From: Anthoceros angustus
Taxonomy: Eukaryota > Plantae > Anthocerotophyta
DNA length: 64,000 nt
Reading direction: 5' to 3'
Assembly (NCBI GenBank): GCA_010909165.1
Contig: MU008166.1
Location: 310,001-374,000, forward strand
Part shown: positions 11,362 to 60,718 of the stretch, in pieces
How the letters are laid out: every line of letters starts with the position of its first letter
Numbering within the stretch: position 1 is the stretch's first letter
Program-made: the position numbers and the translations under genes
Notes under the pieces: model-generated
Told to the model about the DNA's origin: nothing
Seen by the model: the letters and a program-made list of their open reading frames with translations, nothing else
Database searches by the model: none

Positions 11362-11884
11362 AGCGTCCTCTAATTCAAACACACTTTCCTCGAAAAAAAT
11401 ATCAAACACACTTCTAATATTTAGGGCAAGATAAGACGCCACACTCAAAATACAACATGGTTCGTCATCAACTTATGCTGATTAAATATTAATGTGATGT
11501 GAATTTGAACGGCTTTCCGAATAACTTTCGATGTTTTCGATTCCTCGTATTGGAATTCTTTAAAAATCTTGACAGATGGATAGAAAAATGCGCACAAACT
11601 TGTTGAAAAGGAAATATGAAGAGTTAAAATTTAATGTATTATATAGGTTAAAAGGACATTAATATGAAGCAAAAACGATTTGGTGCCATCACCACCAAAG
11701 AGATACTTTGAATGCCAAACGATTCGTAAAACTATTTTCAGGAAATATGATCCTCAATAATCAAACCTGGGGTACAATAACTTACTGTCAAAAGATTAAA
11801 ACTTTGATTATGATTAGACTTCGTTTGAAAAAGTAAAAACCCTATGATACCGAAAATAAACCAGTGTTCACTAAACTGAACAAA

Positions 11885-12214
11885 ATGTCACGTGAGTTAC
11901 TGCCATATGAAAGTAAAAGTCTTGAAGACCATGTGATTGAATTAGAAGACTTGGAGATTGAGCCAGATGATCACAATGTACAATCATCGAAGGAGGCCGG
12001 ACACGTAGACGTACAACCAAACCACATGAGACGTAGAGGATGGTGTTTGTCTATACTATGTTTAACACTATACTTCAATGAGTACAAAAGCTTTGTCTTC
12101 AACTTCACAATACTACTAGGAGTCCTAGCCGGAAGTATATGGTTGTTATTGTTCCTACTAATGTGCCCCAATGAAAACAAGGAGCTGTGCCCTTTCCAAA
12201 TAAAGAAACAATGA
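11885..12214 (+). CDS. Orphan small intronless ORF, acidic N-terminus and 1-2 hydrophobic segments
   Basis: MSRELLPYESKSLEDHVIELEDLEIEPDD..RRRGWCLSILCLTLYF..FVFNFTILLGVLAGSIWLLLFLLMCP..; divergent from the 11071-11361 ORF. Confidence 0.4.
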   Translation: MSRELLPYESKSLEDHVIELEDLEIEPDDHNVQSSKEAGHVDVQPNHMRRRGWCLSILCLTLYFNEYKSFVFNFTILLGVLAGSIWLLLFLLMCPNENKELCPFQIKKQ

Positions 12215-17200: not shown

Positions 17201-18613
17201 GATCAAGAGGGCTCATTCCATGAACGTCGTCGCCCAGTTCCAGGCTCAACAGACAAGCATGCAGCATCAAGAGCCCTCTGCTCCTCGCAGTAACAGCACA
17301 AACGTGGCTGCCAGATCTCTCCCAGCTCCTCCAGCAGCAGCAGCTCCGGGCTCTCTGACGACCATGCAGTTTCTGAGCAATTTGCAGGCCACTGAATCCT
17401 GGATGGCGGTGCAGCGGCCAGCGGCTCCGGGTGCTGTGCAGAATGCGAGCATGCCGTCTCCAAGTCCCTCTATTCCTGCGGGATCTGCTCAGTTTCATGT
17501 TCCTCCCAGTCACATGAGCTTCGCAGGTCCCGGTGGTACCGGCCCTTGGAGCTACAAATTCGTGCCCCACTCCGACTTCAACACTCCTGGGGTACATGTA
17601 CATCATCCAGCTGCGTGGCATAATCAGTTCCAAGCTGCTGTCCAGCAAGATGGGACCGATCAGCCCGCCAGTAGTTTCCAGCATCCCAGCAGAGCCTTGT
17701 CGAATCGGTCTGTTGCACAACGGCTAGCAGCTTCCACCCACGCTGCATCTGGTAAGATTTCAAGTCTTGTGTGTTTCCGAATAGCTTGGGCGGTTCTTCT
17801 TGTTGCAGGCTTCACAGTCTGACTTGTGAATGTGCCTGCAGAGAGATCCAGTCTGGTGGCCAAAAAGCTTGCAGATCGGCTACGCCCTGCAGACCTCTGG
17901 TTTTTGCTTCGACCGGCCCACATCCAGTAAGTGCGAATCAGCAAACCTCGTTGCTGACACTAGAACCATCCTCTGTATTGCTCCCACGCTGCTTCTTACA
18001 CCATCAGCAACTCTGATACAGGCTAGATGACCCTCAGACCGAAACTACCAAGGGAATCTACATGAGGATCAAGTAAGCCAGTTCGACATTTCTCAGATCC
18101 TTCAACATTCTCCTGTGTACAATCTCCACAGCATGGTCTCACCTGCCGCTCATGATATGGACTTCGCAGGGATGGCAAGCTTCCAGTGTCTTATGTGAAG
18201 AGGTACCTTGTCAACAGGCTTGGGCTGCAGAGTGAATCCGAGGTATGTGAGACTTTGATCTGATTGCTGTTCAGCCCCAGATGTTACAGTCACCATTAGA
18301 AGCTAGAACCTGCATTCATGGGCCACACATCGATCTTCTCGGGGTCGTCTATAGAATCTCACATCACGAAGTATGTGTGAACCAGGTCGAGATATCCTGC
18401 AAGGGACAGCCTATTGCATCCAACCTGCCACTACAACATGTGCGAGACTCCGTTTGGTTTTCTCAAACTGGCACAGCAGCAGACAACAGTACTTCCTCGG
18501 ACAGAAGGGCAGCTGAGAGACCTGATAGCTTCAATGAACCGTCTGGGACGTCGTCTTCCAGTGACATGCTCATGGTCCTTACGTACCATCGGCTCCATTT
18601 CTCACAGAGGTAG
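14273..18613 (+). CDS. RING-less RAWUL-domain protein (LAX PANICLE2-like), 1268 aa, long low-complexity N-terminus, 6 exons
   Basis: Exons 14273-14861, 14971-17751, 17842-17926, 18022-18072, 18170-18242, 18386-18613; GT-AG, phases match, 3807 nt. Spliced C-terminus: ADLWFLLRPAHIQLDDPQTETTKGIYMRIKDGKLPVSYVKRYLVNRLGLQSESEVEISCKGQPIASNLPLQHVRDSVW..DMLMVLTYHR, matching the plant RAWUL ubiquitin-like fold. SWLQLGL motif at 15726-15746. Confidence 0.88.
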
Positions 18614-29127: not shown

Positions 29128-29869
29128 GCGCCTCCGAGGACACCACCCATTCGGTGCCGTGAGGCGAGGAGGACGGAAACCATCTTTGTTCGGAGCGGAG
29201 GATGTAGAACCGAGCAGTGCAATGTCGTGGGTTTTCCTTATAGTTTTAGATTCCTGCGGTTTAAGATTCACTGAGTGCTACCCTTAGGTCATGTGCTTTG
29301 CTTAGGACCTGCAGGACCTGCCTTGAGCCCAACTGCTCATTTGGAAGGGTTTGTTCCCTGGTTTTCGCATCCATCAACAGTGTCTGCGCAATATCGGCGG
29401 ATTCCGTTGAAATGGGCTGCTGGGCAAAAGGCAGTAAACTTTCCCATCATCATATTCAAAAAAAAGCATGTCCCAGAAAACCATGTACGTTATTGCGGGT
29501 TTTGAAGAAATTTGGCATCCACTTTTCGACAGGACCGGAAAAGAACGTGGCCAAAAAAATTATTGTCTTTGAATTCATTCCTCCAAAACTTCAGAAAAAG
29601 TGTGGGGACCGGAACTGGTGGATGCGTTTGAACATTTGTCGTACAGGCCGGTCTTATCATGTGTTGTCCTAAAAAAATAAGGTCCATCAGAATAGAGACA
29701 CGGTTTTGGCGATTTGGAACATAATCGCAAATTACATGTTGTACCGTCATTTTGTGTGCCCATACTGCACTTGGTTAAGCCGTTTATGTCCATGGGGAAC
29801 ACACAACCTATCCACTCCTGAGAAGTCGCGGTCAGTGCATACCTTGATCCAGCACTAGTAGGAGTCCAT

Positions 29870-32800
29870 GGTCAATCGAAAACTAACTAATCAACTCCAT
29901 GAACCATGTTCATCAAGTGTTTCAATGTCCTCGCCGGATGCAACATCTTACGCGCCATTATCCATGACGTCCCTTCCTTCCATATGTTCCGAGCTTCCTC
30001 CGCAGGCCAAAAGCGTACATGTTTTTCCGTATTATGGTTCGGTCCTTGCATTTAGTTGCTTCGCTTTTGTTAGAAAACCCGTATGCCAAGATGAATGTGT
30101 GCAGAAGCAATTTGTCGACGTGTTTCCGCAACCTCATGCTCCGTCGTTGAGCGACCCCCACGATCGCCGCGCGTTGGTGGTGATCGTAAAATCATCTCCT
30201 CTAGGTACCTTCAAATGCGTCGGTGCATTTAGTCACCCACCAATGGACTTTAATGAATGGGCGTCACATTGGAAGTCCACAGGAACTTTTGCGAGCCGAA
30301 TGGTCGATTGTCGACATCTGTCTCACAAGGCACCGCAATCATGTGACTGTTTGTATCTCCAACACATCGCCGTTCAAGCTTTCTTGTTCCGCCTTGCGCA
30401 TCATCCGATGCGCTCCAACATACATGTCCGCGGGGCACTTGCGACGATTGGATCTGTAAAATCTCACCTCGGTACAACCAGGCGATGCAACTCTTCATTA
30501 TGTGTTCTATCGTACCATTGCCAAGGGGTCTTCAATTCCTCGGCATGCTCACATGCTATCTTGTCCACGATGGTGATTGCTCACCAATTCCTCCCACCAA
30601 ATATCCTCACTGCGCCCAAATGGGGTCACAGTTTTCCTCTAGTTTCCCACGCATTCTTTGCAAGACTTCTTCGGGATCTCTCCTCTGCAACCGCTTTTTA
30701 CTTGGACCTCCAAATGAACCAAAGCGAGCGGCTTGAATAGGAGTAGATGGGACATTATTCAAAACTCCAAACCCTCGTCCGGTGACCAGTGTTCATCTGG
30801 AATATTGTTTGCCCCTCATCACGATAACAAGTCCGCTCACCTCGCGTTTCTCGGGTTATTTTGAACGATCTTTGAAAAGATATATTGTGCAACTGTTTTC
30901 ACAAACCTGTTTATAGCCAGCCTTCCCATAAGGTATTGGCCACACAAACTTTGAAGTCCGGAACTTCTTTCACCTCCATAATTTTTGGTTTGGGCGTATA
31001 TGCATTCTCCAAAATACCGGTCGGTTTGGGCAACGTAAAGCTTCCTTCGTGCAAGCACTTGAAAACCTCGAAAACATCCGTCAACTGGTCATGAGTGTGC
31101 CCAACCGGAGGAATCCTACTTTTACCTTCTCAAAACCTTAAGCTCTACCAACATATTCGTGTAAGCGAATAGCGTGCATTCTTATTCTCCCGTGCGGTAT
31201 TGTCGAGTTGAAGATAAAGAACCTTTGGTAGTAGTCCTCGTAATTTGAAATGACATCTTTGGATATTGGCTATAGTCGAGTTTGCATCGTTCGGATGTTC
31301 CGTATGCCATGAAGAGTTCCGACACATGGTGTAGTTATAAATCATGCACCCCACAACATGGACGTCGATCAAACCTACATCTGACAGGTCCTTGGGTAAA
31401 CGCGTGAAATGTGGAAGCTGTGTCTTCTGTTGGTCCATCCCGTCGATGGATATCCCGATATACTTTGCCGGATCTCCATAACATTTCACGCGGTGCTTGA
31501 TGCATTTTTCTCTCTCAGACTTCAGTAGCTGCCTGTGCCGCCTCAGATCAGCTTCAAATGCTTCTGCAAAATAATCACCCAAACAACGTTGAGGAATAAA
31601 GCCGCCTGGAAGGAACATAGCAAAATCGAGTCGCGGTGGCCGTGCACTGCAGACGAATAACACACATCCGGAATCATGTTCAAGAGCCTTTGGAGGTGGA
31701 TGCATCGAATTTGTGATGGGCCTATTTTAGGCATTTGAGGTTAAATGAATGATGACCGTGTTCGGTGACCGGCCATCCCCACATTGCCAAAACACAATTT
31801 CACATCAAGCCTCACCTTGTTTTTCTCTGTTTTCTCGCTCTTTATATTTCGTTTGAGGTAATCGCAGTTGTGCACAAGGCAAACCGATTGCTCTTGAATT
31901 TTCACCTTGTGGAAGTCGTAGCCCAAAGTGACAAAAGTAGGAATGAGAAACATCAGATCTTCGGATGCATATGTTGCTTGTATTCTTGAAACACCTCGCC
32001 TTTTGAGTAAGAGTCGGAAGGTGATACACTTCAATGTTTGGCATTCTCTCGGCAATAAGCATAAGCAGTTGGTTCATCCACGCCCAGCTGCGGCATCTTG
32101 ATTCGATCGCCTTCGTACCGCGGAAGGCGGACCACGCAATGTTTCCGATCTCGCTTCTTCACGCTAGACCCGATACAATAACGCGTCAAGGCCTCTCTAC
32201 AACAATACACTTTTCCTCGTCCGACAAGAAAGCAGTCTACCTAACCCTTCCATCGCTCTCATAATCGACATCAAAAGGGATTGTAGGTGCATCTCCGCCT
32301 CGCCGCACATTCTAAGGAACCGATACCTCAAATCTCGAAAGGTTGCCTTCCCTATTGTCCTCAAGCATTGTCTACCACAACAGGTTTTGCGAAAATCACG
32401 GGTAATACGAACCTCTTCACATTTCATCTCAGGCACTTTAGATTGCCGTCTACTTGGGCGTCTACGTGGTGGTCTGCCATGCTCGATAAATGATTCGGAC
32501 CCGGGCTTCAAATTGTATGTACGCCTTTCTGGAGGTGCATGTTCAAATGCACTGTCATCTGAGTCCTCTTCCTCCACATCAGTTCCACCGACGTCTTTGG
32601 GGCCGGCGGTGGAAGCAGTATCTTCTAGATACAACCGCAAACCGAGTTGGCATTCACCCCAGCAGGCGGCCATATCCGAATTAGTGTCGTCCGTGGAGCA
32701 CTTCCGGAGGAGTAGTCTTGCGGATGGCGGGATGTACGGCGAGGCTCTGGCGGAGAAGGACTTCCGTGAATGGAATCCAACATCTTGAAACACCTCGCCT

Positions 32801-33950
32801 TTTGAGTAAGAGTCGGAAGGTGATACACTTCAATGTTTGGCATTCTCTCGGCAATAAGCATAAGCAGTTGGTTCATCAGGCTTTTGACATCTTGATTGAT
32901 CGCCTTCGTACGCGAGACCACGCAATGTTTCCAGCGCTCGCTTCTTCGTGCTAGACCCGATACAATAACGCGTCAAGGCCTCTCTACAACAATACACTTT
33001 TCCTCGTCCAGGCAAAGCGAGTCTACCTAACCCTTCCATCGCTCTCATAATCGACATCAAAAGGGATTGTAGGTGCATCTCCGCTCCTGCACATTCTAAG
33101 GAACCGATACCTCAAATCTCGAAGGTTGCCTTCCCTATTGTCCTCAAGCATTGTCTACCACAAGTTTTGCGAAAATCACGGTGTCTGAACCTCTTCACAT
33201 TTCATCTCGGGCACTTTAGATTGCCGTCTACTTGGGCGTCTACGTGGTGATGCCATGCTCGATAAATGATTCGGACCGGGCTTCAAATTGTATGTACGCC
33301 TTTGGAGGTGGATGTTCAAATGCATCATCGAGTCCTCTTCCTCCACATCAGTTCCACCAGCGTCTTTGAGCCACGGCAGTGGAAGCAGTATCTTCTAGAT
33401 ACCGGCGTGCAAACCGAGTTGGCATTCACCCCAGCAGGCGGCCATATCCGAATTGCGTGTCGTCCGGCGTGGAGCACTTCCGGAGGAGTAGTCTTGCGGA
33501 TGGCGGGATGTACGGCGAGGCTGTCTGGCGGAGAAGGACTTCCGTGAATGGAATCCAACATCTTGAAAGCAGGCGGTGTCTTGGAATGGATGCGGTTATC
33601 GCGTGCGGAAGTGGTGGAGGCCGTGCACCTGCAGTACGAATAACACACATCTGGAATCATGTTCAAGAGCCTTTGGAATGCAATCGATTTCCGGCACGAG
33701 TTTGCACGACGTACCTTCATCTACTTCTCCCTCTTCAACTTGAATACCTTGACTGCCGATAGGCATTTCAAGCTGGGAACCGCGCCGTTGATGCCTCTGA
33801 CCGGAGTGTTGCATATCGGGAGGAATCTCGCGTTACCGATAGCATCCAAGTCCTTTGACTTCAAGAACTCCTTCCTTTGCTTCAACATCGGCAAATTTTC
33901 AAGAGCTACTGTGCATGCGAGGAAGAACGCACTTTGAATCAAGATCAAAG
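29870..33950 (-). mobile_element. Sola-like (DUF7869-type) DDD transposase gene, spliced, partly duplicated and frameshifted (TnpA1)
   Basis: N-terminal CCGRQCL..FRDLRYRF and KVYCCREAL; ERMPNIEVYHLP..FHKVKI..NRFALC. Catalytic core YIGISIDGMDQQKTQLPHF (D ~31444), HPNDANSTI, LPKVLYLQLDNTARENKN (D ~31204), PVGHTHDQ (31102-31091). C-terminal VAVPCETDVDNRPFW.AKV. An ~800-bp segment is duplicated (31986-32790 / 32786-33575). Confidence 0.75.
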
Positions 33951-34329
33951 TCACACCCACAATTATAGACATGTGACATAAGGTGGTACCGGTGGTGTTG
34001 GATGATTTATAATTGCGGTTGCGGTGATGGTGATTCGTGATTCGGTGATGGACCTTGAATGAGAGTGCACCGTCCTTAGAAAATGATGGCATAAGATGAG
34101 GTGGATGCATCGAATTTGTAATGGGCCTATTTTAGGCATTTGAGGTTAAATGAATGATGACCGTGTTCGGTGAACCGTTGCTACTACTTGAGCCGTTTAG
34201 CGTAACTAGCGGTGTTAAGGCTTTATCGTAATCCGTTGATGCGCTTCAAACATCCATATTTCATTTCCACGTAAGCTCGAGCCTCTCCTTTTCATCAAGA
34301 GTTCGAGAGTCCGGATCAATTCTCTTACT

Positions 34330-37300
34330 TCCTCCCGCCAACTTCCCGCATGAGGTTTTGAAGATTGCGGATGGTGATCGCGAGGACGCCACGGAGCAAT
34401 AAGCATGCAGAGATCGACCCCCGCTGCGTTGGAGGCGCCACGCATCGAGCGGCGGAAAAATGCGATGGCGGTGCAAGAGCAGCAGGATCGCCGCAAGGGC
34501 GTCGGATGAGGGGATGCAGATCCCGCGAATGTAACAGAACCCCACCGCTATTATGCAATTGAGAGAATCCTCTCATGGTAGTGTCCGGACGTCCACCTCA
34601 AAGGGTACTCAGCGGAGGATATGAAGACATTGATGGCGGTGAGGAGCACCAACCTCGGTGGAAATGCACGATCATTCCTCATGCTTTTAACTTTGTGGAG
34701 CAGCTTTCGGTGAAAAAGCTCCGATTCTCTTCCGCGGTACAACACAGACAAAGAGTGGAGCGTTGTTGCGGAAGAACCCAAGATCCAGTGCCTTGGATTC
34801 CACTCGGCCTTATGGATTAACGTTACAATGGTATTGAGGGGATTCCTGCAAGAGTCGGATGGATTCTATGCAGCGATGGGCGGAATGGCGAAGATATGCA
34901 CATACGCTTTTGGTCACCAAGAAACCTCATTTGCACATAAACGATGACATCAACACACATCTCCTGCGATAATGGATGCTGCCAAGATAATGCCTCGTCG
35001 TTGTGAGCCAGTTGAAATCGGCCTTGCGTGATTCCAAAAGTGTTCAAGATGTAAGTCGTTGTATGTCATGTATCACTTCCCATTTTCGATTAGGGTTTCG
35101 CATCTTTGGTATACTCATTGTTTTCCTCTTTAAAATGAACAGGGGGGAGAACAATTTTGCCGCGTTCTACTCCGCTACGCCGCTGAAGGGGTGCTGAAGA
35201 ACAGAGGTGTAGTGATCAGACGCGCTGGTGATCGGGCAGGCGAGGCGGTGCGAACGCAATTCGCCGCGCTATCAGGCGGGCCGGTGGGTTGTGTGCAGAC
35301 CGAAACGATGCCCCGGATTATGCAACCGGAGATGGAGGAGGACGAGGTTCCCGGTGGCCAGGCCGAGCCGAGCTCTCCGGAAGAGGAGGAGCGCCTCGCC
35401 TCGGTCCGATCGGAGGCGAGCACAGGCGGCCCATGGCTCGCAACATGTCCAGCCTCGGGGTCTTGAATGAGGCTTTTGAGGAGGAGGTGACCCTCCTCGT
35501 CAGAAGAGGAGGAGCGCCTCGCCTCGTGGTCCGGCGCGGAGGCGAGCACACCAATCAAGCGAAAGAGGAAGAAGAAGGGAATCCAGCTGTCGGTCAGTGA
35601 AGATGAGAAGGCGAATGGCTGGTAAGAATGTCCCCCCGCCTCCGCACCAACCCATGTAAGAATTGAAGCATCTTGTTTTGATTTCCATGCGAGAGCACCA
35701 ATCAAGCGAAGAGGAAGGCAAGATCTCGGTGGTGATGGAGAAGTGGGCGGGCGGAAAAATTAAGGAAGTCGAGGAAGCATGCGAAGAGGAAGCCGTTGCG
35801 GACGACCACGGATGCGAGCAGGAGCTCCTTTCGCGAGGACGCCACGGAGCAATAAGCATGCAGATCGACCCCCGCTGCGTTGGAGGCGCCGCCACGCATC
35901 AGGAAGCAGCGGAAAAATGCAGTGGCGGCTGCAAGAGCAGCAGGATCGTTGCAAGGGCGCGTACCGGATGAGGGGATGCAGATCCCCGCGAATGTGGTAA
36001 CAGGAACCCCACCTGCTATTATGCAATTGAGAGAATCCTCTCATGGTAGTGTCCAGACGTCCACCTCAAAGGGTACTCAACGGAGAGGATATGAAGACAT
36101 TGATGGCCAGCGAGGGAGCACCAACCTCAGTGGAAATGCAGTCACTGCGATTCCTCATGCTTTTAACTTTGTGGAGCAGCGGTGAAAAAGCTCCGTGATT
36201 CTCTTCCGCGGTACAACATGCATAAAGAGTGGAGCGTTGTTGCGAAGAAGAACCCAAGATCCAGTGCCTTGGATTCCACTCGGCCTTATGGATTAACGGT
36301 TACAATGGTATTGAGGGGATTCCTGCAAGAGTCGGATGGATTCTATGTAACAAGGACGAATGGGCGAAGATATGCACATACGCTTTTGGTCACCAAGAAA
36401 CCTCATTTGCACATAAACGATGACATCAACACACATCTCCTCGATAATGGATGCTGCCAAGATAATGCCTCGTCGTTGTGAGCCAGTTGAAATCGGCCTT
36501 GCGTGATTCCAAAAGTGTTCAAGATGTAAGTCGGTTGTATGTCACCATGTATCACTTCCCATTTTCGCTTAGGGTTTCGCCGCATCTTTACTCATTGTTT
36601 TCCTCTTTAAATGAATGGGGAGAACAATTTTGCGCGTTCTACTCGCTACGCCTGAAGGTGAAGAATGCAGGTGTAGTGATCGACGCTACCGGTGATCGGG
36701 CGAGGCGGTGCGAACGCACCGCGCTATCAGCGGGCCGTGGGTTGTGTGTGCATCGAAACGATGCCCCGGATTATGCAACCGGAGATGGAGGAGGACGAGG
36801 TTCCGGGCTGCCGAGCCGAGCTCTCCGGAAGAGGAGGAGCGCCTCGCCTCGTGGTCCGGCGCGGAGGCGAGCTCGACGGCCGCCCATGGCTCGCAACATG
36901 TCCAGCCTCGGGGTCTTGAATCGAGGCTTTTGAGGAGGAGGTGACCCTCCTCGTCCGAAGAGGAAGAAGAAGGGAATCCGCACTGTGAAAGAAGAAGAAG
37001 GGAATCACTGCCCAGTCACCGTGAAGATGAGAAGGCGAATGGCTGGTAAGAATGCCCTGCCCGCCTCCGCACCAACCCATGTAAGAATTGAAGCATCTTG
37101 TTTTGATTTCCATGCGAGAGCACCAATCAAGCGAAAGAGGAAGGCAAGATCTCGTGGTGATGGAGAAGAGGTGGGCGAGGGCGGAAAAATTAAGGAAGTC
37201 GAGGAAGCATGCGAAGAGGAAGCCGTTGCGGACGACCACGATGCCGAACGACGGAGCTCCTTCGCAGGAGGATGACTATCGGAGATGGTTCGCACTCGGG

Positions 37301-37370
37301 CCTACAAGAAGCGGGTGCAAACCACAACATTCGACATTCACATATCATTTTCGTCACGCTTCATTTCTAA
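34330..37370 (+). other. Duplicated, scrambled coding-like region upstream of the ParB module
   Basis: Two imperfect copies (~34330-35470 and ~35750-36950) of a segment reading AIMQLRESSHGSV..HAFNFVEQLSVKKLRDSLPRY..HTLLVTKKPHLHINDDINTHLL..QLKSALRDSKSVQD followed by a GTAAGT donor, then acidic/low-complexity exons. Confidence 0.45.
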
Positions 37371-37375
37371 CGCAG

Positions 37376-40300
37376 ATGCTCGAGATAAGGAAGGTGGATG
37401 AGGCATGGATGAAGTGCCTTGTTCGACGGATGAGGGGATTCCTGCAAGAGTGGAGCGTTGTTGCGAAGAAGAAGGGCGCTCCCACTTTTGTGCATGATTG
37501 ATCCGGCCACGGTGCTTGAAGAAGAAGATGCACCGGAGGAGATCGAGCTCAAAGATTACACCCTAGGGGTCTTTGGGAGGGAACCATTGCTATGCCATGC
37601 GACCATGCGAAATGTATCCGGAAGATAAATTTCAATGGCTTGAGGCCATGTATATGAGCTTGATAGAGGAAGAAATGCGGTGCCGGCGTGATCACAATGT
37701 GTATGCGACAAGAGGAAGAAGCTTGGTTTTATTGAACAAGTCCGCTACATACATGATGAGCTTGAGATTTTGTACCGGACACACCCGATGGAAAACCATG
37801 CGGTGGAAGTTCAATGTGTACAAGTTGGGGATGCCGGAGGAGGCTGGAAACTCAAGGACACGATTATGTAAGATGGTGGGAGGAAGACTGCCGTTGAGGA
37901 TTGCGAGTGCGGGGGTAAATTGTGGAGAACGTGGACACCATTTTCCATGTGGGAGAAGTGCGAACTCCCAGGCGGCGAGGCAGCCTGATCGGGGGCGGCG
38001 GCGGCGAAAGCGGAAGCCCTGACCCAACAGCGGCCGGTCCTCGGCCCCTCGTCCGGCTCCAATGCTCGGAAGGGCATGGAGAGCATTCAAGGAGTCCCGA
38101 AGGACGAAAGGTGAAGAGATGTTGATAGCGTGACCCGAAGGTCATCCAAAGACAAGTGCTTGAAGAAGAAGATGCACCGGAGGAGATCGAGCTCAAAGAT
38201 TACACCCTAGGGGTGCCGAGGGAACTATTGCTATGCCGCCATGCATAATCGTCGAAATGTATCCGGAAGATAAATTTCAATGGCTTGAGGGCCATGTATA
38301 TGCAGCTTGACAGAGGAAGAAATGGGCTGATCACAATGTGTATGCATAAGAGGAAGAAGCTTGGTTTTATTGAACAAGTACGCTACATACATGATGAGCT
38401 TGAGATTTGGCACCGGACACACCCGATGGAAAACCGACTGCGGAAGTTCAATGTGTACAAGTTGGGGATGCCGGAGGAGGCTGGAAAACCCAAGGACACG
38501 ATTATGTAAGATGGTGGATGGAAGACTGCTGAGGATTGCGAGGTGGGTAAATTGTGGGAGAACGTGGACACCATTTTCCATGTGGGAGAAGTGCGAACTC
38601 CAGCAGTGCAGACAATGGGGGACGCGGCGAAGCAAACGGAAGCCACAAGACCCAACTACAACAGCACCGCCCCTTAATCCCTCGTCCGGCTCCAATGCTC
38701 TAAGGGCATGGAGAGCATTCCAAGGAGTCCCAAGGACGAGAAGGTGAAGAGATGTTGATAGTGACCCGTAAGGTCATCCAAGGAAACCGCAGCTAAAAGA
38801 TATGGATACGATGTTGGCAGGAAGAAGATTAACCTTATCGAGCATGCCTTCGAAGGCTATGAAGTGTGCCACCTTGAAGTCGCCAAGCAGTTCCAAAACA
38901 TCTAGGCCAAGGAAGGGACGCTCCCACTTTTGTGCATGATTGATCCGGCACGGTGCTTGAAGAAGAAGATGCACGGAGGAGATCGAGCCCATTACACCCT
39001 AGGGGTCTGGGAGGGAACCATTGCTATGCCGCCATGCAGTATCCCCGGAAGATAAATTTCAATGGCTTGAGGGCCATGTATATGCGAGCTTGACAGAGGA
39101 AGAAATGCGGTCTTTGGCTGATCACAATGTGTGCGACAAGAGGAAGAAGCTTGGTTTTATTGAACAAGTCCGCTACATACATGATGAGCTTGAGATTTGG
39201 CACCGGACACACCCGATGGAAAACCATGCGGTGGAAGTTCAATGTGTACAAGTTGGGGATGCCGGAGGAGGCTGGAAACTCAAGGACACGATTATGTACG
39301 AAGATGGTGGGAGGAAGACTGCCGTTGAGGATTGCGAGTGCGGGGGTAAATTGTGGAGAACGTGGACACCATTTTCCATGTGGGAGAAGTGCGAACTCCC
39401 AGGCGGCGAGGCAGCCTGATCGGGGGCGGCGGCGGCGAAAGCGGAAGCCCTGACCCAACAGCGGCCGGTCCTCGGCCCCTCGTCCGGCTCCAATGCTCGG
39501 AAGGGCATGGAGAGCATTCAAGGAGTCCCGAAGGACGAAAGGTGAAGAGATGTTGATAGCGTGACCCGAAGGTCATCCAAAGACAAGTGCTTGAAGAAAG
39601 AAGATGCACCGGAGGAGATCGAGCTCAAAGATTACACCCTAGGGGTGCCGAGGGAACTATTGCTATGCCGCCATGCATAATCGTCGAAATGTATCCGGAA
39701 GATAAATTTCAATGGCTTGAGGGCCATGTATATGCAGCTTGACAGAGGAAGAAATGGGCTGATCACAATGTGTATGCATAAGAGGAAGAAGCTTGGTTTT
39801 ATTGAACAAGTACGCTACATACATGATGAGCTTGAGATTTGGCACCGGACACACCCGATGGAAAACCGACTGCAGGAAGTTCAATGTGTACAAGTTGCCG
39901 GGATGCCGGAGGAGGCTGGAAAACCCAAGGACACGATTATGTAAGATGGTGGATGGAAGACTGCTGAGGATTGCGAGGTGGGTAAATTGTGGGAGAACGT
40001 GGACACCATTTTCCATGTGGGAGAAGTGCGAACTCCAGCAGTGCAGACAATGGGGGACGCGGCGAAGCAAACGGAAGCCACAAGACCCAACTACAACAGC
40101 ACCGCCCCTTAATCCCTCGTCCGGCTCCAATGCTCTAAGGGCATGGAGAGCATTCCAAGGAGTCCCAAGGACGAGAAGGTGAAGAGATGTTGATAGTGAC
40201 CCGTAAGGTCATCCAAGGAAACCGCAGCTAAAAGATATGGATACGATGTTGGCAGGAAGAAGATTAACCTTATCGAGCATGCCTTCGAAGGCTATGAAGT

Positions 40301-43300
40301 GTGCCACCTTGAAGTCGCCAAGCAGTTCCAAAACATCTAGGCCAAGGAATTGGCGAAGTTTCAAACGACTTTTGCAGTGGTAAGTGAGTGTATTCGTTGG
40401 GAGTCGCGGTCGTGGCGCATTTGCAGATCTTGTGGTGGCCGGCGCCTCTGTTGTTTGTTACCGTAGGCGCAGTGCGCGCGCGCGCGCGCGCGCGCGCGCG
40501 CGCGCGCGCGCCGGTGCGCCGGTGACCGGCGCCCGGCGGTGACGGCCACTAGTCGTCGCCGCGCCTCCAGCACAGGTTGGTGGAGTCGCCGGCGCCACCG
40601 CAATCTGGTGGCCACGCCTCCTTCTGTCAATGAGTTTCGACCACCGTCTGCTTGCGTAAACCGGGAGACATTGAGGATCTGGAAAGCCTTCCAAAACCGT
40701 TTCAGGATTTTGTTTATAGCATGTGTAACTGGAAACGGATGGAAGAAGAGCGAAAACAAATGGCAGACAAGGACATGGATGCAAGGCTGAGCAGTTTCAG
40801 AGTGCCGGGGTCTTCGGACAAAGTGGCATACTAGGTGGTGCATCGCGACATTTTGGACATGAAAGGATTCTTGCCACCGAGGAGGTATACTCTTCTTTTC
40901 TGCGACCTCCCTCGAGGTTTACAGCGGCATGAGAATGACAAGGCTTTCGTTGAAGAAGAATTGAAAGAGCTCATCAGCTCTTTCAACGAGAAGACCACCA
41001 GCGATGTGTTCCGGATAATTCTGATGCATGGGGTGGATGGGGTGATTCAAGCCAGGGAGGCTTTGAGGTCGTGGTGCAGGAAAGGAGTCATTCGGACGGT
41101 ATGGAGAAAACCAACATCCCACCTAACGGTGGTCTTTGTGGAAAGCAGTGGAATATTTGGCGATGGGAGCGCGGTGAGGGCGAGTCCAATGTCGGAAAAG
41201 CTCCTCTTTTCGGCAAAGACATCAAGCAGTCAAGAGTTATCCGACATGGGAAGTGGTGAAGAAGGCGATTTACCACAGGTGATAAGATGGTCGTATCGCC
41301 ATATCGAAACCGTGGGCTTATTAGGCATGTTGGTGAACATGTTCTCCAACGAAGGCATGGATGAAGTGCCTTGTTCGATGATGCGCAGGTCACGAAGGGA
41401 CGCTCCCACTTTTGTGCATGATTGATCCAAAGACATGCTTGAAGAAAGAAGATGCACGGAGGAGATCGAGCCCGGCATTACCCTAGGGGTCTTTGGGAGG
41501 GAACCATTGCTATGCCGCCATGCGAACCTCGAAATGTATCCGGAAGATAAATTTCAATGGCTTGAGGGCCATGTATATGAGCAGAGGAAGAAATGCGGGT
41601 CTTGGCGGTTGATCACAATGTGTATGCGACAAGAGGAAGAAGCTTGGTTTTATTGAACAAGTACGCTATACATGATGAGCTTGAGATTTGGCACCGGACA
41701 CACCCGATGGAAACCCATGCGTGGAAGTTCAATGTGTACAAGTTGGGGATCTTTGGAGGAGGTGGAAACTCAAGGACACGATTATGTACGAAGATGGTGG
41801 GAGGAAGACTCTGAGGATTGAGGATTGCAGGTAAATTGTGGGAGAACGTGGACACCATTTTCCGGATGTGGGAGAAGTGCGAACTCCAGGCAGGCGGGAA
41901 GCAGCCGATCGGGGGCGGCAGGCGGCGAAAGCGGAAGCCACAAGACCCAACTACAACACGGCCGGTCCCTAATCGGCCCCCTCGTCGCTCCAATGCTCGG
42001 AAGGGCATGGAGAGCATTCAAGGAGTCCCGAAGGACGAGAAGGTGAAGATGTTGATAGCGGTGACCGGAAGGTCATCCAAGCTGCAGCTAAAAGATATGG
42101 ATACGATGTTGGCAGGAAGAAGATTAACCTTATCGAGCATGCCTTTGAAGGCTATGAAGTGTGCCACCTTGAAGTCGCCAAAGCAGTTCCCAAACATCTA
42201 GGCCAAGGAATTGGCGGTTTCAAACTTTTGAAAGTGGTAAGTGAGTGTATTCGTTGGGAGTCGGGGTCGGCACCAATCTTGTGGGTGGCCTCCCTGTTGT
42301 GCGTGGCGCAGCGCGCGCGCCGGCCGACCGCGACACCACAAGTGCGCCGGTGGCCGCCCGGCGCGCCGGTGGCGCCTCGCGCTGGCCGGCACTCGCCGTC
42401 GCCGGCGCCGACCGCGACTCCACTGCATTTTCGGTGGAGTGCGCCGGTGACCGCGACACCACAAGTGCGCCGGTGGCCGGCCTCCACGTCAATGAGTTGT
42501 CGACCACCGTCTGCTTGCGTAAACCGGAGACATTGAGGATTTGGAAAGCCAAAACCTTTCCAAGATTTTGTTTATAGCGCGCAATCGAAACGGATGGAAG
42601 AAGAGCGAAAACAAATGGCCGACAAGGACATGGATGCGGTGCGGTTTGAGTGCAGGTCTTGGACAAAGTGGCATATCGGTGGTGCATCGAGACATTTTGG
42701 ATATGAAAGGATTTTTGCCACCGAGGAGGTATACTCTTCTTTTCTGCGACCTCCCTCGAGGTTTACAGTGACATGAGAATGACAAGGCTTTCGTTGAAGA
42801 AGAATTGAAAGAGATCATCGCTCTTTCAACGAGAAGACCACCGATGTGTTAGGATAATTCTTATGCATGGGGTGGATGGGGTGATTCAAGCCGGGAGGCT
42901 TTGAGGTCTTGGTGCGGGAAAGGAGTCATTCAAAGTATGGAGAAAACCAACATCCCACCTAACGGTGGTCTTTGTGGAAAGCAGTGGAATATTTGATGGG
43001 AAGCGCGGTGAGGATGAGTCCAATGAAAGCTCCTCTTTTCCAAAGACATCAACAGTCAAGAGTTATCCGACATGGATGTGGTGAAGAAGGCGATTTACCA
43101 CCTGATAAGATGGTCGTATCGCCATATCGAAACCGTGGGCTTATTAGGCATGTTGGTGAACATGTTCTCCAACGAAGACCCGGATTGTTGGCCTTTGTGC
43201 GGGATCGGGATCATTTTGGTGGCGGGATACAGCGGAAAAGGAACGTTGTGGCCATTGACAAAGGCATACGATGCTCAATGTATATGTCACAACGAGTGAG

Positions 43301-45250
43301 CAGGTTGGAGGCGGTGGGTTCGAAGAAATAACAACAGATAAGTTTTCGGGCCACAGCAAGTTTTGGGCAAAGGAGATCCGTGCACGGAGATCGAGCTCAA
43401 AGATTACACCCTAGGGGTGCCGGAGGGAACATTGCTATGCCGCCATGCCATACCGCAAAATGTATCCGCGGAAGATAAATTTCAATGGCTTGAGGGCCAT
43501 GTATATGCGAGCTTGACAGAGGAAGAAGGGTGCGTTGATCACAATGTGTATGCATAAGAGGAAGAAGCTTGGTTTTATTGAACAAGTACGCTATACATGA
43601 TGAGCTTGAGATTTGGCACCGGACACACCCGATGGAAAACCGATGCGTGGAAGTTCAATGTACAAGTTGCCGGGATGCCGGAGGAGGCTGGAAAACCCAA
43701 GGACACGATTATGTAAGATGGTGGATGGAAGACTGCTGAGGATTGCGAGGTGCAGGGGTAAATTGTGGAGAACGTGGACACCATTTTCCGATGTGGGAGA
43801 AGTGCGAACTCCCAGGTGAACAAAGACAGTGACGACGGGCGCAAAGAAACGGAAGCCACAAGACCCAACTACAACGGCCCTAATCTCGTCCGGCTCCAAT
43901 GCTCAAGGGCATGGAGAGCATTCCAAGGAGTCCCGAAGGACGAGAAGGTGAAGAGATGTTGATAGTGACCCGAAGGTCATCCAAGGAAACCGCAGCTAAA
44001 AGATATGGATATGATGTTGGCAACAGGAAGAAGATTAACCTTATCGAGCATGCCTTCGAAGGCTATGAAGACTTCATCAAGTCGCCAAACGAGGCCAAGG
44101 AACCACAAGTTTCAAACAATGAAAGTGGTAAGTGAGTGTATTCGTTAGAGTGCGCCGGCCACCAAGATTTGCCGACCGCGACTTTGTTGTTTGTTAGTGG
44201 CAGGCGCGCGCGCGCGCGCGCGCGCGCGCGCCGCGAGTGCGCGCCGACCGATCGCTGGCTGACGGTGCGCCGGCCGACCGGCACTCGCTGAGTGCGCCGG
44301 CCGACCGCGACTCCTGCGGCCGCCGGTTCGGTGGAGGCGCCGACCGGCGACACCACAAGTGCGCCGGCCGACCGCGACTCCATCACTGCCAATGAGTTCT
44401 CGACCACCGTCTGCTTGCGTAAACCGGGAGACATTGAGGATTTGAAAGCCCGCCAAAACCTTTCCAAGATTTTGTTTATAGCGCGAATCGGAAACGGATG
44501 GAAGAAGAGCGAAAACAAATGGCCGACAAGGACATGGATGTGGTGAAAGCCAGAGTGCCCGGTCTTGGACAAAGTGGCATATCGTGGTGCATCGAGACAT
44601 TTTGGATATGAAAGGATTTTTGCCACCGAGGAGGTATACTCTTCTTTTCTGCGACCTCCCTCGAGGTTTACACGCATGAGAATGACAAGGCTTTCGTTGA
44701 AGAAGAATTGAAAGAGATCATCAGCTCTTTCAACGAGAAGACCACGAGCGATGTGTTCGGATAATTCTTATGCATGGGGTGGATGGGGTGATTCAAGCCG
44801 GGGAGGCTTTGAGGTCTTGGTGCGGGAAAGGAGTCATTCGGACGGTATGGAGAAAACCAACATCCCACCTAACGGTGGTCTTTGTGGAAAGCAGTGGAAT
44901 ATTTGATGGGAAGCGCGGTGAGGGCGAGTCCAATGTCGGAAAAGCTCCTCTTTTCGGCAAAGACATCAAGCAGTCAAGAGTTATCCGACATGGGAAGTGG
45001 TGAAGAAGGCGATTTACCACAGGTGATAAGATGGTCGTATCGCCATATCGAAACCGTGGGCTTATTAGGCATGTTGGTGAACATGTTCTCCAACGAAGGC
45101 ATGGATTGTTGGCCTTTGTGCGGGATCGGGATCATTTTGGTGGCGGGATACAGCGGAAAAGGAGCGTTGTGGCCATTGACAAAGGCATACGATGCTCAAT
45201 GTATATGTCTAGCAGTGAGCAGGTTGGAGGCGGTGGGTTCGAAGAAATAA
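37376..45250 (+). CDS. ParB/Srx-like domain fused via a probable intron to a beta-class amino (N6A/N4C)-type DNA methyltransferase fold; several partial tandem copies
   Basis: ParB-like consensus from the copies: LEIRKVDEAWMKCLVRRM..PLLCMIDPATVLEEEDAPEEIELKDYTLGVFGGNHCYAAM..FQWLEGHVYASLTEEEMRSLADHNV..RKKLGFIEQVRYIH (GGNH at 37576, ~39010, ~41497). GTAAGT donors at 40380, 42237, 44128. MTase: RYTLLFCDLPRGL (motif IV-like; 40904, 42748, 44653), VFRIILMHG, HIETVGLLGMLVNMFSNEG then WIVGLCAGSGSF.VAGYSGKRNVVAIDK (motif I; ~43190, ~45110, ~46245). Most complete units: ~41435-43330 and ~43390-45250. No copy is free of frameshifts. Confidence 0.72.
40474..40511. repeat. (GC)19 alternating run in the probable ParB-MTase intron
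   Basis: Uninterrupted GCGCGC.. at 40474-40511; the homologous position in another copy has (GC)14 at 44204-44231. Confidence 0.95.
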
Positions 45251-47390
45251 CAACAGATAAGTTTTCGGGCCACAGCAAGTTTTGGGCAAAGGAGATCCGT
45301 GCACGGAGGCATTGAAAATGCAAGTGTATAGCTTGCTTGGAAAGAAGGGTCGAATGAAGGACTCCGAGACCCGGGGACGGCGGTTGAAGACCAAGCGGCA
45401 TTGACAATATGGGATGAAAACGGCACACTACCACCGCACAATGTAGGCTGACGCTTCGCTTTGGTTGAAGGCGATGACTTTGGTGACACGGAAAAGGCGA
45501 GGATTTGGAAAATGTAGAAAGCGGTGCAGTTCAGACTCAATTTGGTTGAAGTAGATGACCCTTTGGGTAGCAGGACTTGTAGATGAGGGGCTCTGTCCGG
45601 TTGACGTATAATTCGTTTTGACCCTTCGTGGAAAATGCGACTTTGATTTGAATGCATATTACGTGTTTTGGACCCATAGTCTTGGCTCTGCCCTTTCCCA
45701 GTAAGTCTCGGAAGGGTCGGGCTTTGAAACAAAAGTGTGCATACATGGAAAAACCTCGATATTACTTACATTGTTCTAAGTGGAACTGCCATTCACATCT
45801 CTTTTAAAAACACGTGTTTTGCTTGATATGAGAAAGGGTGGCAACCTCATTCGCGCAAAAGAGGCTTTCAAGAATCCGCCCGATATTGCGCGAGTCTATT
45901 CATCACGTTTGAGTTTGAGCTTGATTTATGTGAGCTTGCTCTTATTGATTGCATAGAGGGAGCAACAAGCTTGACAAGTTCTTTGCTGGTCTTGACTTAG
46001 CCTCGATCTTGTAAACTTCACTTTTGCTAGCTGTCTTTGTGTGAGCTTGGTGTTTTCTGTGGATTCAGATAGACTCTTGCGGTAGCTCAATTGTGAGGAT
46101 TCTTCACGGGAGGGAGGGAGGGAGAGGGCCTCATGGGCATTCCGACATCTATCCAGTGCGGTTTGGCGGGGGCCATGGGCACATCAACACCTAGTGGTGT
46201 CTTGTCATGTCGCATGTAGTGTATGCTTGTCGTCGTCGTCCTTTGTGCGGGATCGGGATCATTTTGGTGGCCGGATACAACGGAAAGGCGTTGTGGCCAT
46301 TGACAAAGGCATACGATGCTCAATGTATATGTCACAACGAGTGAACGGGTTGGGCGGGCGACGAGTTCAAATAACAACAGATAAGTTTTCGGGCCACAGT
46401 TTTGGGCAAAGGAGATCTGCGGAGGCATTGGCGGAAAATGCAAGTGTATAGCTTGCTTGGAAAGAAGGGTCGAATGAAGGACTCCAGACCCGGGGACCGG
46501 CGGTTGAAGACCAAGCATTGACAATATGGGATGAAAACGGCACACTACCACGCAGACAACAGGCTCCGGCGTTTTACTGCAGTTGAAGGCGATGACTTTG
46601 GTGACACGGAAAAGGCGGGATTTGGAAAATGTAGAAAGCGGTGCAGTTCAGCTCAATTTGGTTGAAGTAGATGACCCTTTGGGTAGCAGGACTTGTAGAT
46701 GAGGGGCTCTGTCCGGTTGACCGGTATAATTCCGTTTTGACCCTTCGTGGAAAATGCCCGACTTTGATTTGAATGCATATTACGTGTTTTGGACCCATAG
46801 TCGCACCCTTTCCCAGTAAGTCTCGGAAGGGTGCGGACGGCCGTACAAACAAAAGTGTGCATACATGGAAAAAACCTCGATATTACTTACATTGTTCTAA
46901 GTGGAACTGCCATTGACACATCTCTTTTAAAAACACGTGTTTTGCTTGATATGAGAAAGGGTGGCAACCTCCGCCCAAAGCGCAAAAGAGGCTTTCAAGA
47001 ATCACCGATATTGCGCGAGTCTTCATCACGTTTAATGTGTTTGAGCTTGATTTATGTGAGCTTGCTCTTATTGATTGCATAGAGGAGCAACAAGCTTGAC
47101 AAGTTCTTTGCTGGTCTTGACTTAGCCTCGATCTTGTAAACTTCACTTATTGCTTGCTGTATCTTTGTTGTGTGAGCTTGGTGTTTTCTGGATTCGAGAT
47201 AGACTCTTGCGGTAGCTCAATTGTGAGGATTCTTCACGGGAGGGAGGGAGGAGAGGGCCTCATGGGCATTCCGACATCTATCCGTGCCTTTGGCGGGGGC
47301 CACGGGCACATCAACACCTAGTGGTGTCTTGTCATGTCGTCATGTTTGCATGTAGTGTATGCTTGTCATGTCGTCGTCCTTTGTGCAGTC
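45110..47390 (+). repeat. Tandem duplication of ~1.13 kb covering the MTase C-terminus and downstream sequence
   Basis: ~45115-46248 and ~46240-47386 are imperfect copies joined at the shared 9-mer CCTTTGTGC (46240-46248). Confidence 0.85.
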
Positions 47391-47480: not shown

Positions 47481-47694
47481 CATTTGTTCATGCTGTCATC
47501 ATGTCACGTTGTGCACTGTAAGCATTTGTTCATGCTGTCATCGTATCACGTTGTGCACCTGTAGGCATCTGTTCATGCTGTCATCGTGTCACGTTGTGCA
47601 CCTGTAGGCATCTGTTCATGCTGTCATCATGTCACGTTGTGCACCTGTAGGCATCTGTTCATGCTGTCATCATCTCACGTTGTGCACCCGTGGG
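47481..47694. repeat. Minisatellite, 5 x 43 bp (first copy 42 bp)
   Basis: CAT(T/C)TGTTCATGCTGTCATC(A/G)T(G/A/C)TCACGTTGTGCACCTGTAGG at 47481, 47523, 47566, 47609, 47652. Confidence 0.95.
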
Positions 47695-48591
47695 CAATTG
47701 TTCCAACATGTGCATAATTTAATGTGCATTCTTGTGAATGCAATCTGCACCTAGCATTGCTCTGATACCATTACGAAATATGGAAATGGTGCAAACCAAT
47801 TGAGTATTTATCAATTACATTATTGTAGATATGCAAGAAAGCATTAGTAAATTGATTGTAGCAACTAGACTTATTCTAGTAGCCAAGAGACATGACCTTT
47901 GGCCTAGCGACGTAACCCTAATGAAAGGGTAAGCTAAATAAATTAAAGCTATATACACACATACACTAGATATAATAACTATAAGTAATAACTCAACACT
48001 CTATCTTCAATATGCACAGCCTTGCAAAGCCTGTACAGTGTGACAACATAGTCTAGTAAACTCAGCACCCAGAAACAGGGTGACAACATAGCAGATCTGG
48101 AAAACGCAGCCCCCGGAGCAATGTGAAAATAGAAACCTCGGGGCACGACAGCTTGCATTAATTCGTTGTCCTCCTCGCAGTACAGAGTGTTCATCCAATC
48201 GGGTTGTGCTCATCTCAAGACTGCAGAATGAACATGATCTATCAGGGCAACGAAACATATATCAGCAAAACGACAGCAGCGTTATAGCACCAGAATTTGG
48301 GTCACAAGTCTTCAGAGCCAAAAACATTTTAGAACGGTGCACTTGCAAAGCTGTATGGTGACAACACATTCTAGTAAACTCGGCACCCGTAAATGTGGTG
48401 ACAACATAGCAGATCGATAAACGCAGCCCAAACAATGTGAAAATAGCATCATCGGGCACGACTTGCATTAATTGCTCTCCGCACGCGACAGTGTTGATCG
48501 AATCGGGTTGTGCTCATCTCAAGACCATGATTGATCATGAACCACCGTAACTACATGCCTCGGTAAGAGTACTCACCTTCCTCGCTTGCTT

Positions 48592-59797: not shown

Positions 59798-60718
59798 ATG
59801 GCGTACCGTCAGAAGCGTGAGCAGCCGACGGAGTATGTGCTGGTGCAGGACCAAAGGAAGCGCAAGCGGCCGATGAGGATCAGATCTATGAGTGAGTCTG
59901 CGGTGTTTCAGCAGGCAGGGAAGCCGGAAGACGCACTGCTAGCGAGGGTGCATACTGTGAGGAGCAAGAACGGCAAGGGCCAGGGCCAGGACCGGCAGAG
60001 GCGGAAGGAGCAGGAGCAAGAACCTGGACGGGAGCAGGGGGAGGCAGAGGTGGCGGTGACAGTGCCGTTCAGGTTTTGTGAGGCTGTGGATCTGGACCGG
60101 ATCGTTTTCAAGAACCGGAGCCTGCTGCAGGGAGCGATCGAGGAGTTCGGGCTCATCAAGTTCCTGATGCTGGTGGAGAGGTGGTGGTATTCGCATCACG
60201 AAAAGTTTTTTTCGCATCCGGCGATGGAGTCGGGGGCCTGGGTGGCTGCATGGGAGCAGCTCAAGCCTGTTCAACCGCGGGACGTCGTAATGGGATTCTC
60301 TACGGACGAGGACATTCTGAGCTTAAGCGTGAACAACCCCGCACTGTTCTGGGAAGCGCTGCACCGGCTGGGTATTAGGGCTTTTCTGGACCTTGTCGAC
60401 CTCTGGGGTCGAAGGCATAATCCGGTCGCCGGGGCGAGGAACAGGAGCCGTGAGGCAAAGAACGCTAGGACGGGTCGAAGATATGGCGTAGCCGACGCGC
60501 ACTCCTTGATAACACTTGACCATCTCCAGGAAGAATCGGATGTGGATTATTGCAGATCCGGTTGGATGGTAGCCACCAAACATTATTATATGAATGGGGC
60601 GACCCAGAAGTTCTATTATTCTCCCCAGGGAAAGGTTCTGTATTCAAAACAGCTTGTGCATAACTACGCGCTAATGAAAGCGAGTTCCCGAGGCATGGAG
60701 TCTATATTTCGAGCATAG
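59798..60718 (+). CDS. Intronless 306-aa ORF: NLS-like motif, two internal helical repeats, C-terminal MBD-like domain
   Basis: Clean ATG-to-stop ORF. RKRKRP; repeats NRSLLQGAIEEFGLIKFLMLVERW / NPALFWEALHRLGIRAFLDLVDLW; CRSGWMVATKHYYMNGATQKFYYSPQGKVLYSKQLVHNY follows the MBD pattern GW..YYSP.GK..(R)SK..V..Y. A 2 x 35 bp duplication lies just upstream (59715-59784). Confidence 0.7.
   Translation: MAYRQKREQPTEYVLVQDQRKRKRPMRIRSMSESAVFQQAGKPEDALLARVHTVRSKNGKGQGQDRQRRKEQEQEPGREQGEAEVAVTVPFRFCEAVDLDRIVFKNRSLLQGAIEEFGLIKFLMLVERWWYSHHEKFFSHPAMESGAWVAAWEQLKPVQPRDVVMGFSTDEDILSLSVNNPALFWEALHRLGIRAFLDLVDLWGRRHNPVAGARNRSREAKNARTGRRYGVADAHSLITLDHLQEESDVDYCRSGWMVATKHYYMNGATQKFYYSPQGKVLYSKQLVHNYALMKASSRGMESIFRA

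Follow-up and report, generated by a model that had tools for sequence, protein, structure and literature searches.

The window analysed here is a 64-kb stretch of Anthoceros angustus DNA, and all coordinates are positions within it. Its region from ~29.4 to 45.9 kb (47.0 kb including a duplicated end) is very probably a decayed and internally rearranged two-gene cut-and-paste DNA transposon of the Sola1 type. In this element, a Sola-type DDD transposase on the minus strand lies head-to-head with a plus-strand accessory gene that couples a domain with a GGNH motif to a beta-class methyltransferase fold, and other genomes also have these two genes together as a unit. This anatomy, proposed earlier from the letters alone (the sequence-only reading), stands. 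The window copy itself is dead, the tandemly scrambled wreck of two genes. The observation is thus real but was over-read: the architecture had been read correctly, but the system, put forward as a candidate new one, is not new in kind because the same design was published in 2025 for Sola1-1_Ec32 of the brown alga Ectocarpus (PMC12477816).

The region is eukaryotic repeat DNA of ~50% G+C, with a strongly positive GC skew at 34–48 kb. Homology beyond chance was evident from tblastn with intact DUF7869 proteins, at expectation values (E) of 1e-46 to 1e-32, and from phmmer with a 196-amino-acid (aa) open reading frame (ORF) at an E of 3e-10. The motifs on which the sequence-only reading was based were all located, namely IDGMDQ, LDNTARENKN and GHTH on the minus strand, and GGNH, DLPRGL, CAGSGS/VVAIDK and the GTAAGT donors on the plus strand. 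However, neither of the two genes it described is intact, as the transposase core contains 4 stops and the accessory motifs are split over reading frames.

Transposase pseudogene and candidate element ends

The DDD transposase pseudogene spans 30072..33568 on the minus strand, as delimited by PF25273, tblastn, in-frame stops and motif matches. By tblastn it consists of a C-terminal piece (30072-30260), a catalytic core (30767-31705) and N-terminal pieces (31916-32080 and 32293-32430), and a CCGRQCL-type N-terminal region at 32.4–31.9 kb is partly duplicated. In a Pfam scan of ten window ORFs, the ORF at 31145-31705 matched DUF7869 (PF25273) with an E of 3.6e-12. Intact DUF7869 proteins aligned to 31.6–30.8 kb with ~40% identity over ~240 aa (tblastn, E down to 8e-46); the DUF7869 proteins come from Riccia sorocarpa, Ceratopteris richardii and Adiantum, among others. 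The motifs IDGMDQ (31430-31447), LDNTARENKN (31178-31207) and GHTH (31091-31102) are all present, and the 4 in-frame stops of the core (31705-30767) are located between the second and third catalytic motifs and beyond. Self-BLAST revealed a tandem duplication of ~800 bp on this side (31984-32790 and 32783-33568), the most upstream transposase-homologous piece being at 32.9 kb. The two genes had been described as starting within a few hundred bp of each other. This proved wrong, as the transposase repeat ends at ~33.6 kb and the first recognisable ParB-like piece is at 37.5 kb.

Compared by eye, the window motifs IDGMDQ, LDNTARENKN and VGHTHDQL correspond one-to-one to MDGANQ, VDNTVAENKN and VGHTHIQIDQ of Sola1-1_Ec32, the transposase of which has Repbase Sola1-1_PPa as its best BLASTP match (PMC12477816). 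Because of this correspondence and that match, and with the Pfam family shared, the window transposase is assigned to Sola1. From its name, we take Sola1-1_PPa to be a Physcomitrella patens element.

Candidate ends were found by local alignment of the left flank with the reverse complement of the right flank. The candidate left inverted repeat, imperfect and 27–40 nt long with the core GCGCAATATCGG, is at 29373..29412 on the plus strand (26 matches in a 28-position alignment). Its candidate right partner, which shares the 12-mer core, is at 45866..45903 on the minus strand, and a second right copy at ~46990-47028 stems from a tandem duplication (45113-46248 and 46240-47386). The core occurs in the window once on the plus strand and only twice on the minus strand (45891 and 47016), while 0.17 chance matches with one mismatch are expected, and the imperfect repeat brackets exactly the gene pair. 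The ends are tentative because the adjoining 4-mers, ATCC and CACG, do not match as a 4-bp target-site duplication (TSD). No inverted repeat of at least 150 nt was found in the window, and seeds of 10–14 nt and BLAST gave nothing usable beyond (GC)n. Just past the duplicated right end, at 47481-47703, lies a 43-bp tandem repeat with 5.2 copies and 93% matches.

Accessory region: tandem copies of a GGNH domain and a methyltransferase fold

Self-comparison showed that the plus-strand region is not the single gene that had been proposed; serial local tandem duplications have left six ParB-like parts, three methyltransferase N-parts and three motif-I segments. The duplicated pairs are 34378-35510 with 35831-36964, 37471-38914 with 38912-40349, 41480-43389 with 43408-45308, and 45113-46248 with 46240-47386, and cross-matches also join six units of ~640 bp and three of ~1.1 kb. 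The first pair, together with 35568-35839 and 36991-37269, makes up a low-complexity, purine-rich spacer at 34378..37269 on the plus strand (89–92% identity by self-BLAST). This spacer is probably a remnant of the acidic or Ser-rich N-terminal region of the accessory protein. Its position matches that of the low-complexity N-terminus in an intact 488-aa ORF from another assembly (locus L003, below), and tblastn detected no direct homology between the two. In a low-coverage DNA run from the same organism, short high-depth contigs covered the methyltransferase parts, indicating that those parts are repeated in that genome.

Downstream of the spacer, four tandem GGNH-region fragments (37512-38149, 38156-38781, 38953-39580 and 39587-40216, plus strand) share 85–97% identity by self-BLAST. 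The motif itself is found at 37576, 39010 and 41496, and residues 302-372 of the L003 ORF match 39057-39281 (tblastn, E 6e-9). The ~640-bp units align to the domain of intact relatives, P.VVM.DP....DFD...KY..YVLGGNH...A followed by ...P..........V..GLT..E....A.DHN.....R......I..V.Y. YVLGGNH is invariant, with conserved flanks, in four diverged intact relatives, while in the window the GGNH pieces are out of frame with their flanks and frameshifted on both sides of the motif. The invariant GG-H of the relatives thus confirms GGNH as the true frame and shows that the window copies are frameshifted around it.

Sequence comparisons make it probable that the GGNH domain is of the ParB/Srx type, the evidence being weak but consistent. 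Of the ParB assignment made in the sequence-only reading, the conserved GGNH motif held; a significant ParB/Srx profile or structure match was not found. Just 2 of 38,880 PHROG families were hit, both named ParB-like partition protein (E 0.023 and 0.39), and the domain of one relative (L007) matched DUF6551 weakly (E 0.073). The window ParB-like fragments had no Pfam hit, and searches with the GGNH region against PDB sequences (phmmer) and phages (tblastn) returned chance hits only, as did NCBIfam, with a single one. A homologue search with the ParB-like ORF as query gave one hit. The published Ectocarpus homologue is described as ParB-like (PMC12477816). As leads, ParB_N and DUF6551 clusters dominate the named language-model neighbours of the domain, and the model of the nearest cluster resembles ParB_N proteins at template-modelling scores of 0.53–0.57. 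The nearest language-model neighbours, at 0.95–0.96 and ahead of ParB_N and DUF6551, are Ascomycota clusters of Pfam DUF3723, again a lead. The queries in this comparison were residues 215-400 of the L003 ORF 3375-4841 and residues 30-200 of the ORF 5975-7147 (minus strand) of L006, the Riccia locus described below; hmmscan of the GGNH domain gave no DUF3723 match. DUF3723 is a conserved accessory gene of the fungal Starship giant transposons (bioRxiv 10.1101/2021.12.13.472469).

An intron at 40380..40651 (plus strand) is predicted between the ParB-like/linker exon and the methyltransferase exon from the conservation of its donor. The GTAAGT donor at 40380 recurs at 42237 and 44128 in conserved context, and a GTAAGT is present at the homologous codon position in locus L005 (5199). 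Microsatellites of (GC)19-21, with Z-DNA-forming potential, lie inside the predicted intron in copies 1 (the (GC)19 tract at 40474-40511) and 3 (44204-44244); copy 2 lacks them or has shorter ones.

The plus-strand methyltransferase section (METHYLTRANSFERASE) begins with copy 1 at 40652..41425. Its longest ORF, 40835-41425 (196 aa), contains DLPRGL at 40904-40921 and gave E values of 3e-10 by phmmer and 3e-22 by tblastn. This copy has no motif I and passes from FSNEG straight into another ParB-like fragment. Tandem unit 2 (41425..43378) is composed of a ParB-like part (41425-42080), a methyltransferase N-part (42664-42969) and a motif-I segment (43192-43378), and tandem unit 3 (43386..45320) has the same parts at 43386-43984, 44584-45207 and 45113-45308. 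A third motif-I segment (46240-46417) lies in the tandem duplication at the right end; all are on the plus strand. DLPRGL is found at 40904, 42748 and 44653, CAGSGS at 43196, 45117 and 46244, and VVAIDK at 43245, 45166 and 46290. A stop codon follows DLPRGLQ in copies 2 and 3, and in every copy FSNE, CAGSGS and VVAIDK fall in three reading frames (offsets of 31 and 49 or 46 nt).

The window methyltransferase fragments alone had no Pfam hit. Among 1.8 billion representatives, phmmer with the 196-aa ORF identified eight relatives (P0001-P0007 labelled), the best being P0001 with an E of 3e-10, and a homologue search with P0001 as query gave three hits. Full-length relatives carry PF01555 (N6_N4_Mtase) C-terminal to the part aligned with the window (E 3e-12 to 6e-7). 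The sequence-only reading had motif IV preceding motif I, and this holds in each window copy, where DLPRGL is upstream of YRHIET..FSNEG, which is upstream of CAGSGS..VVAIDK. It holds also in the intact relatives, the alignment of which runs PRxYTL..D(L/I)P(R/Y)G, FHS..D with VW.K, YQKP..L...FS..G, D.C.GSGS and NV.AVD. The binding motif of the relatives for S-adenosylmethionine (SAM) reads DGCSGSGS...NVVAVD, and its window counterparts CAGSGS and NVVAIDK are in separate frames. By tblastn, P0005 matched 390 phage records, mostly annotated as DNA methylases, with 24–27% identity over >80% of the length. An AlphaFold model of P0001 residues 1-340 (predicted local distance difference test score (pLDDT) 69, predicted template-modelling score 0.70) had as its top Foldseek matches in the PDB, at probability 1.0 and E 8e-12 to 3e-8, CcrM, M.MboIIA, M.BceJIV, M1.HpyAVI, M.RsrI, the Adineta vaga N4-cytosine methyltransferase and M.PvuII. 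A methyltransferase profile and structure match, which the sequence-only reading had predicted, is thus provided by the PF01555 hits of the relatives and the resemblance of the P0001 model to beta-class enzymes. As judged from this model, the accessory gene's methyltransferase fold is confirmed as beta-class, of the bacterial or phage type.

Each of the three window copies has DLPRGL as motif IV, and so do loci L001, L002, L003 and L005, mutually diverged families (34–58% identity) from another organism's assembly. In a sister clade, L004, L006 (Riccia) and L007, it is DIPYGF. Neither DLPRG nor DIPYG fits the canonical (D/N/S)PP(Y/F/W), which is absent from the window copies. The DLPRG variant looks selected rather than decayed because intact proteins that carry it keep the SAM-side motifs YQKP, CxGSGS and NVxAVD.

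Recurrence of the gene pair and known relatives

The divergent pair of a transposase and a GGNH plus methyltransferase gene was found again in L003, L005, L006 and L007. In L003 (SRR33208241), a DUF7869 protein of 619 aa on the minus strand is accompanied by the GGNH ORF of 488 aa and the methyltransferase, both on the plus strand, and L005 (SRR33208241) and the metagenome contig L007 (ERZ1034419) have the divergent layout seen in the window. L006 is from Riccia sorocarpa chromosome CM100794.1, where an annotated 856-aa PF01555 gene is head-to-head with a 1076-aa DUF7869 gene and the GGNH, DIPYG and CAGSGT exons are intact. The two genes are tail-to-tail in L004. In total, the two genes are neighbours in five further contigs, which come from four sources; the arrangement is divergent in all but L004. 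There is no nucleotide similarity between the L003–L007 loci and the window, indicating that these loci represent independent lineages.

In the Riccia locus (28028937-28053222 of the chromosome), an apparently intact two-gene element at 4043-15075 has an Ion_trans/EF-hand gene on either side. Positions 4043 and 15075 hold a perfect inverted repeat of 21 nt, CATCCGCTACTTTAAAGCGGG. AACCG, reported as the terminal sequence of the Ectocarpus Sola1-1 (PMC12477816), precedes the right end, and the left end abuts a gap of 100 N, where a terminal inverted repeat (TIR) or TSD is unreadable. L005 also carries a Peptidase_C48 (Ulp1-like) ORF at 11918-12892 (minus strand) and a RecQ-type helicase fragment at 15394-15961 (plus strand). 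Both are typical of other plant DNA transposons, which suggests that the region is dense in transposons or that the element is a larger, composite one.

The closest published counterpart is Sola1-1_Ec32 of Ectocarpus, an element of 21.5 kb with a 282-bp TIR (AACCG...CGGTT) and a 4-bp TSD that encodes a Sola-1 transposase and, on the opposite strand, a 1104-aa protein with ParB and N4-cytosine/N6-adenine (N4C/N6A) methyltransferase domains (PMC12477816, Genome Biol 2025). Like it, the window element is large and has an opposite-strand accessory gene of the ParB-like and N4C/N6A-type methyltransferase kind, the accessory genes being compared by description, and transposases of the Sola1-1_Ec32 kind are likewise often pseudogenised. 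By contrast, the Ectocarpus element has defined TIR and TSD in a brown alga, while the window copy, in a land plant, is dead and tandemly rearranged with uncertain termini.

Other known systems share parts of this design. CcrM, M.MboIIA, M.RsrI and M.PvuII (PF01555) and the rotifer N4C methyltransferase N4CMT have the fold and the motif order IV-X-I in common with the window family. Unlike them, that family has DLPR(G) or DIPY(G) as motif IV, is fused to the GGNH domain and a long low-complexity N-terminus, and is transposon-borne. N4CMT, for its part, carries a chromodomain and has been domesticated as a host gene. The red-alga Plavaka (CMC/EnSpm) elements have two accessory genes, PAG2 for a putative N6A methylase and PAG3 for a ParB-like DNA-binding protein, whose products are proposed to act on the DNA of their own element (bioRxiv 10.1101/2025.02.11.637652). 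These, too, are giant DNA transposons with a methylase and a ParB-like binder; however, their transposase belongs to another superfamily, and ParB and the methylase are encoded by separate genes, the former fused with a 2-oxoglutarate oxygenase and the latter with a SET domain. ParB-associated methylases of phage origin in eukaryotes and ParB-Tls loci in phages and prophages have been described (Iyer et al. 2016, PMC4738411). The phage and prophage genes likewise bring a ParB module together with an amino-methyltransferase in a mobile element, but are prokaryotic and have canonical motifs; they are the likely ultimate source of the accessory cargo. A phage cluster named "DNA methylase/ParB N-terminal domain" belongs to the structural neighbours of the best Atlas hit and not to those of the query. 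A genuine ParB-methylase fusion for a profile-profile test was sought among the phage and plasmid hits, and the seven proteins fetched were stand-alone or helix-turn-helix-fused; none of nine phage or plasmid methylases fetched or scanned had ParB_N.

Elsewhere in the window, the longest ORF (14955-17822, plus strand, 955 aa) lies in a stretch of 58–64% G+C with strong GC skew and had no Pfam hit; a Pfam scan of ten large window ORFs beyond the ten scanned first gave no hits. The ORF at 59798-60718 (plus strand), proposed to encode a degenerate methyl-CpG-binding-domain protein, had no Pfam hit at an E of 0.01.

Alternative readings and implications

Several observations weigh against a Sola1-type element with a ParB-like, DNA-modifying cargo. 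The Sola1 likeness is one of motifs read by eye and of a shared Pfam family, and the window has no clear TIRs or TSD, only the imperfect inverted repeat of 27–40 nt. The intact GGNH relatives gave no Pfam match to ParB_N at E up to 5, hmmsearch of PDB sequences with the GGNH profile was empty, and an AlphaFold model of the GGNH region, from an 8-row alignment, had a pLDDT of 42 and was not used. Motif IV is DLPR, so that amino-methyltransferase activity is not implied by the sequence. Finally, the tandem structure could in part be an assembly artefact. We consider it unlikely that the six- and three-fold structure as such reflects a collapse or mis-join of dispersed copies. The family is repeated in the genome and the array copies, at 85–97% identity, are in the range prone to assembler mis-joins. 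The copies nevertheless have private lesions in common, such as identical frameshifts around GGNH and motif I as well as a shared YRHIET variant. This agrees with a single dead copy having been duplicated locally and serially, and no contig evidence contradicts the assembly, the DNA run being far too shallow to test the arrangement. That the adjacency is accidental, the methyltransferase array being an independent repeat or captured host gene that came to lie next to a dead transposase unrelated to it, seems very improbable. Such an accident would accord with the lack of a convincing shared TIR or TSD enclosing both genes, with the ~4 kb of uncharacterised duplicated sequence between the transposase and accessory regions, and with the high-depth contigs that cover the methyltransferase parts and none of the ParB-like fragments. 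It is countered by the same gene neighbours in the five other contigs, and by the significant inverted 12-mer core that brackets exactly the pair.

The alternative with the most in its favour concerns the chemistry. The accessory protein may not be a DNA amino-methyltransferase at all: DLPRG would be inactive for N6A or N4C, and the protein would be a SAM- or DNA-binding regulator or act on another atom or substrate. We regard this as a real possibility, if not the expected outcome. DLPRGL replaces the canonical motif in every window copy and in the four loci of the other assembly, and its retention across such divergence, with DIPYGF kept in the sister clade, argues for selection on the variant, as the SAM-side motifs are retained in the intact relatives. 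Against this, motif IV keeps its Asp and one Pro, and active beta-class enzymes have the same overall fold and order of motifs. The cargo modifying DNA at bases other than 5-methylcytosine, as the sequence-only reading had it, was not borne out, motif IV being DLPR rather than DPPY-like and the window copy a stack of pseudogenes.

For the two-gene Sola1-type element, we envisage the following. The minus-strand gene is that of the DUF7869/Sola1-family DDD transposase, which in active relatives would excise and reinsert the element. The divergent plus-strand gene comprised, in this order, the low-complexity N-terminus, the GGNH domain of probable ParB/Srx type, a linker, the predicted intron with the GTAAGT donor and the beta-class methyltransferase of bacterial or phage ancestry. 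Most likely, the accessory protein would bind the DNA of its own element through the ParB-like domain and act on it through the SAM-binding domain; possible effects are a mark on the element, control over when it transposes or a dampening of host silencing. After function was lost, unequal recombination or replication slippage probably multiplied pieces of both genes in tandem.

A broader proposal, which we hold only tentatively and think doubtful as a whole, is that in Sola1 elements of land plants and related lineages the accessory protein is under purifying selection, its active site having been remodelled from DPPY-like to DLPRG with the SAM side kept, for a chemistry or a SAM-dependent DNA-binding role that beta-class enzymes are not known to have; the GGNH domain may further belong to the same ParB-like lineage as the Starship DUF3723. 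If true, that kinship would suggest that large transposons of eukaryotes have in common a module for handling their own DNA.

The window copy, dead and scrambled, adds little alone, and the questions it raises are those of the family rather than of the locus: what the DLPRG enzyme does, which the conservation of the variant makes testable, and whether GGNH is a true ParB/Srx relative, possibly akin to DUF3723. What has been published is a one-paragraph description of a single brown-alga family (PMC12477816). The presence of the two-gene unit in a liverwort chromosome, in several other eukaryotic assemblies and in this genome shows it to be an ancient design with a wide distribution. A transposon equipped with a DNA-binding and DNA-modifying protein of its own could mark itself or gain protection, which is relevant to how mobile elements escape from, or make use of, the epigenetic control of their hosts.

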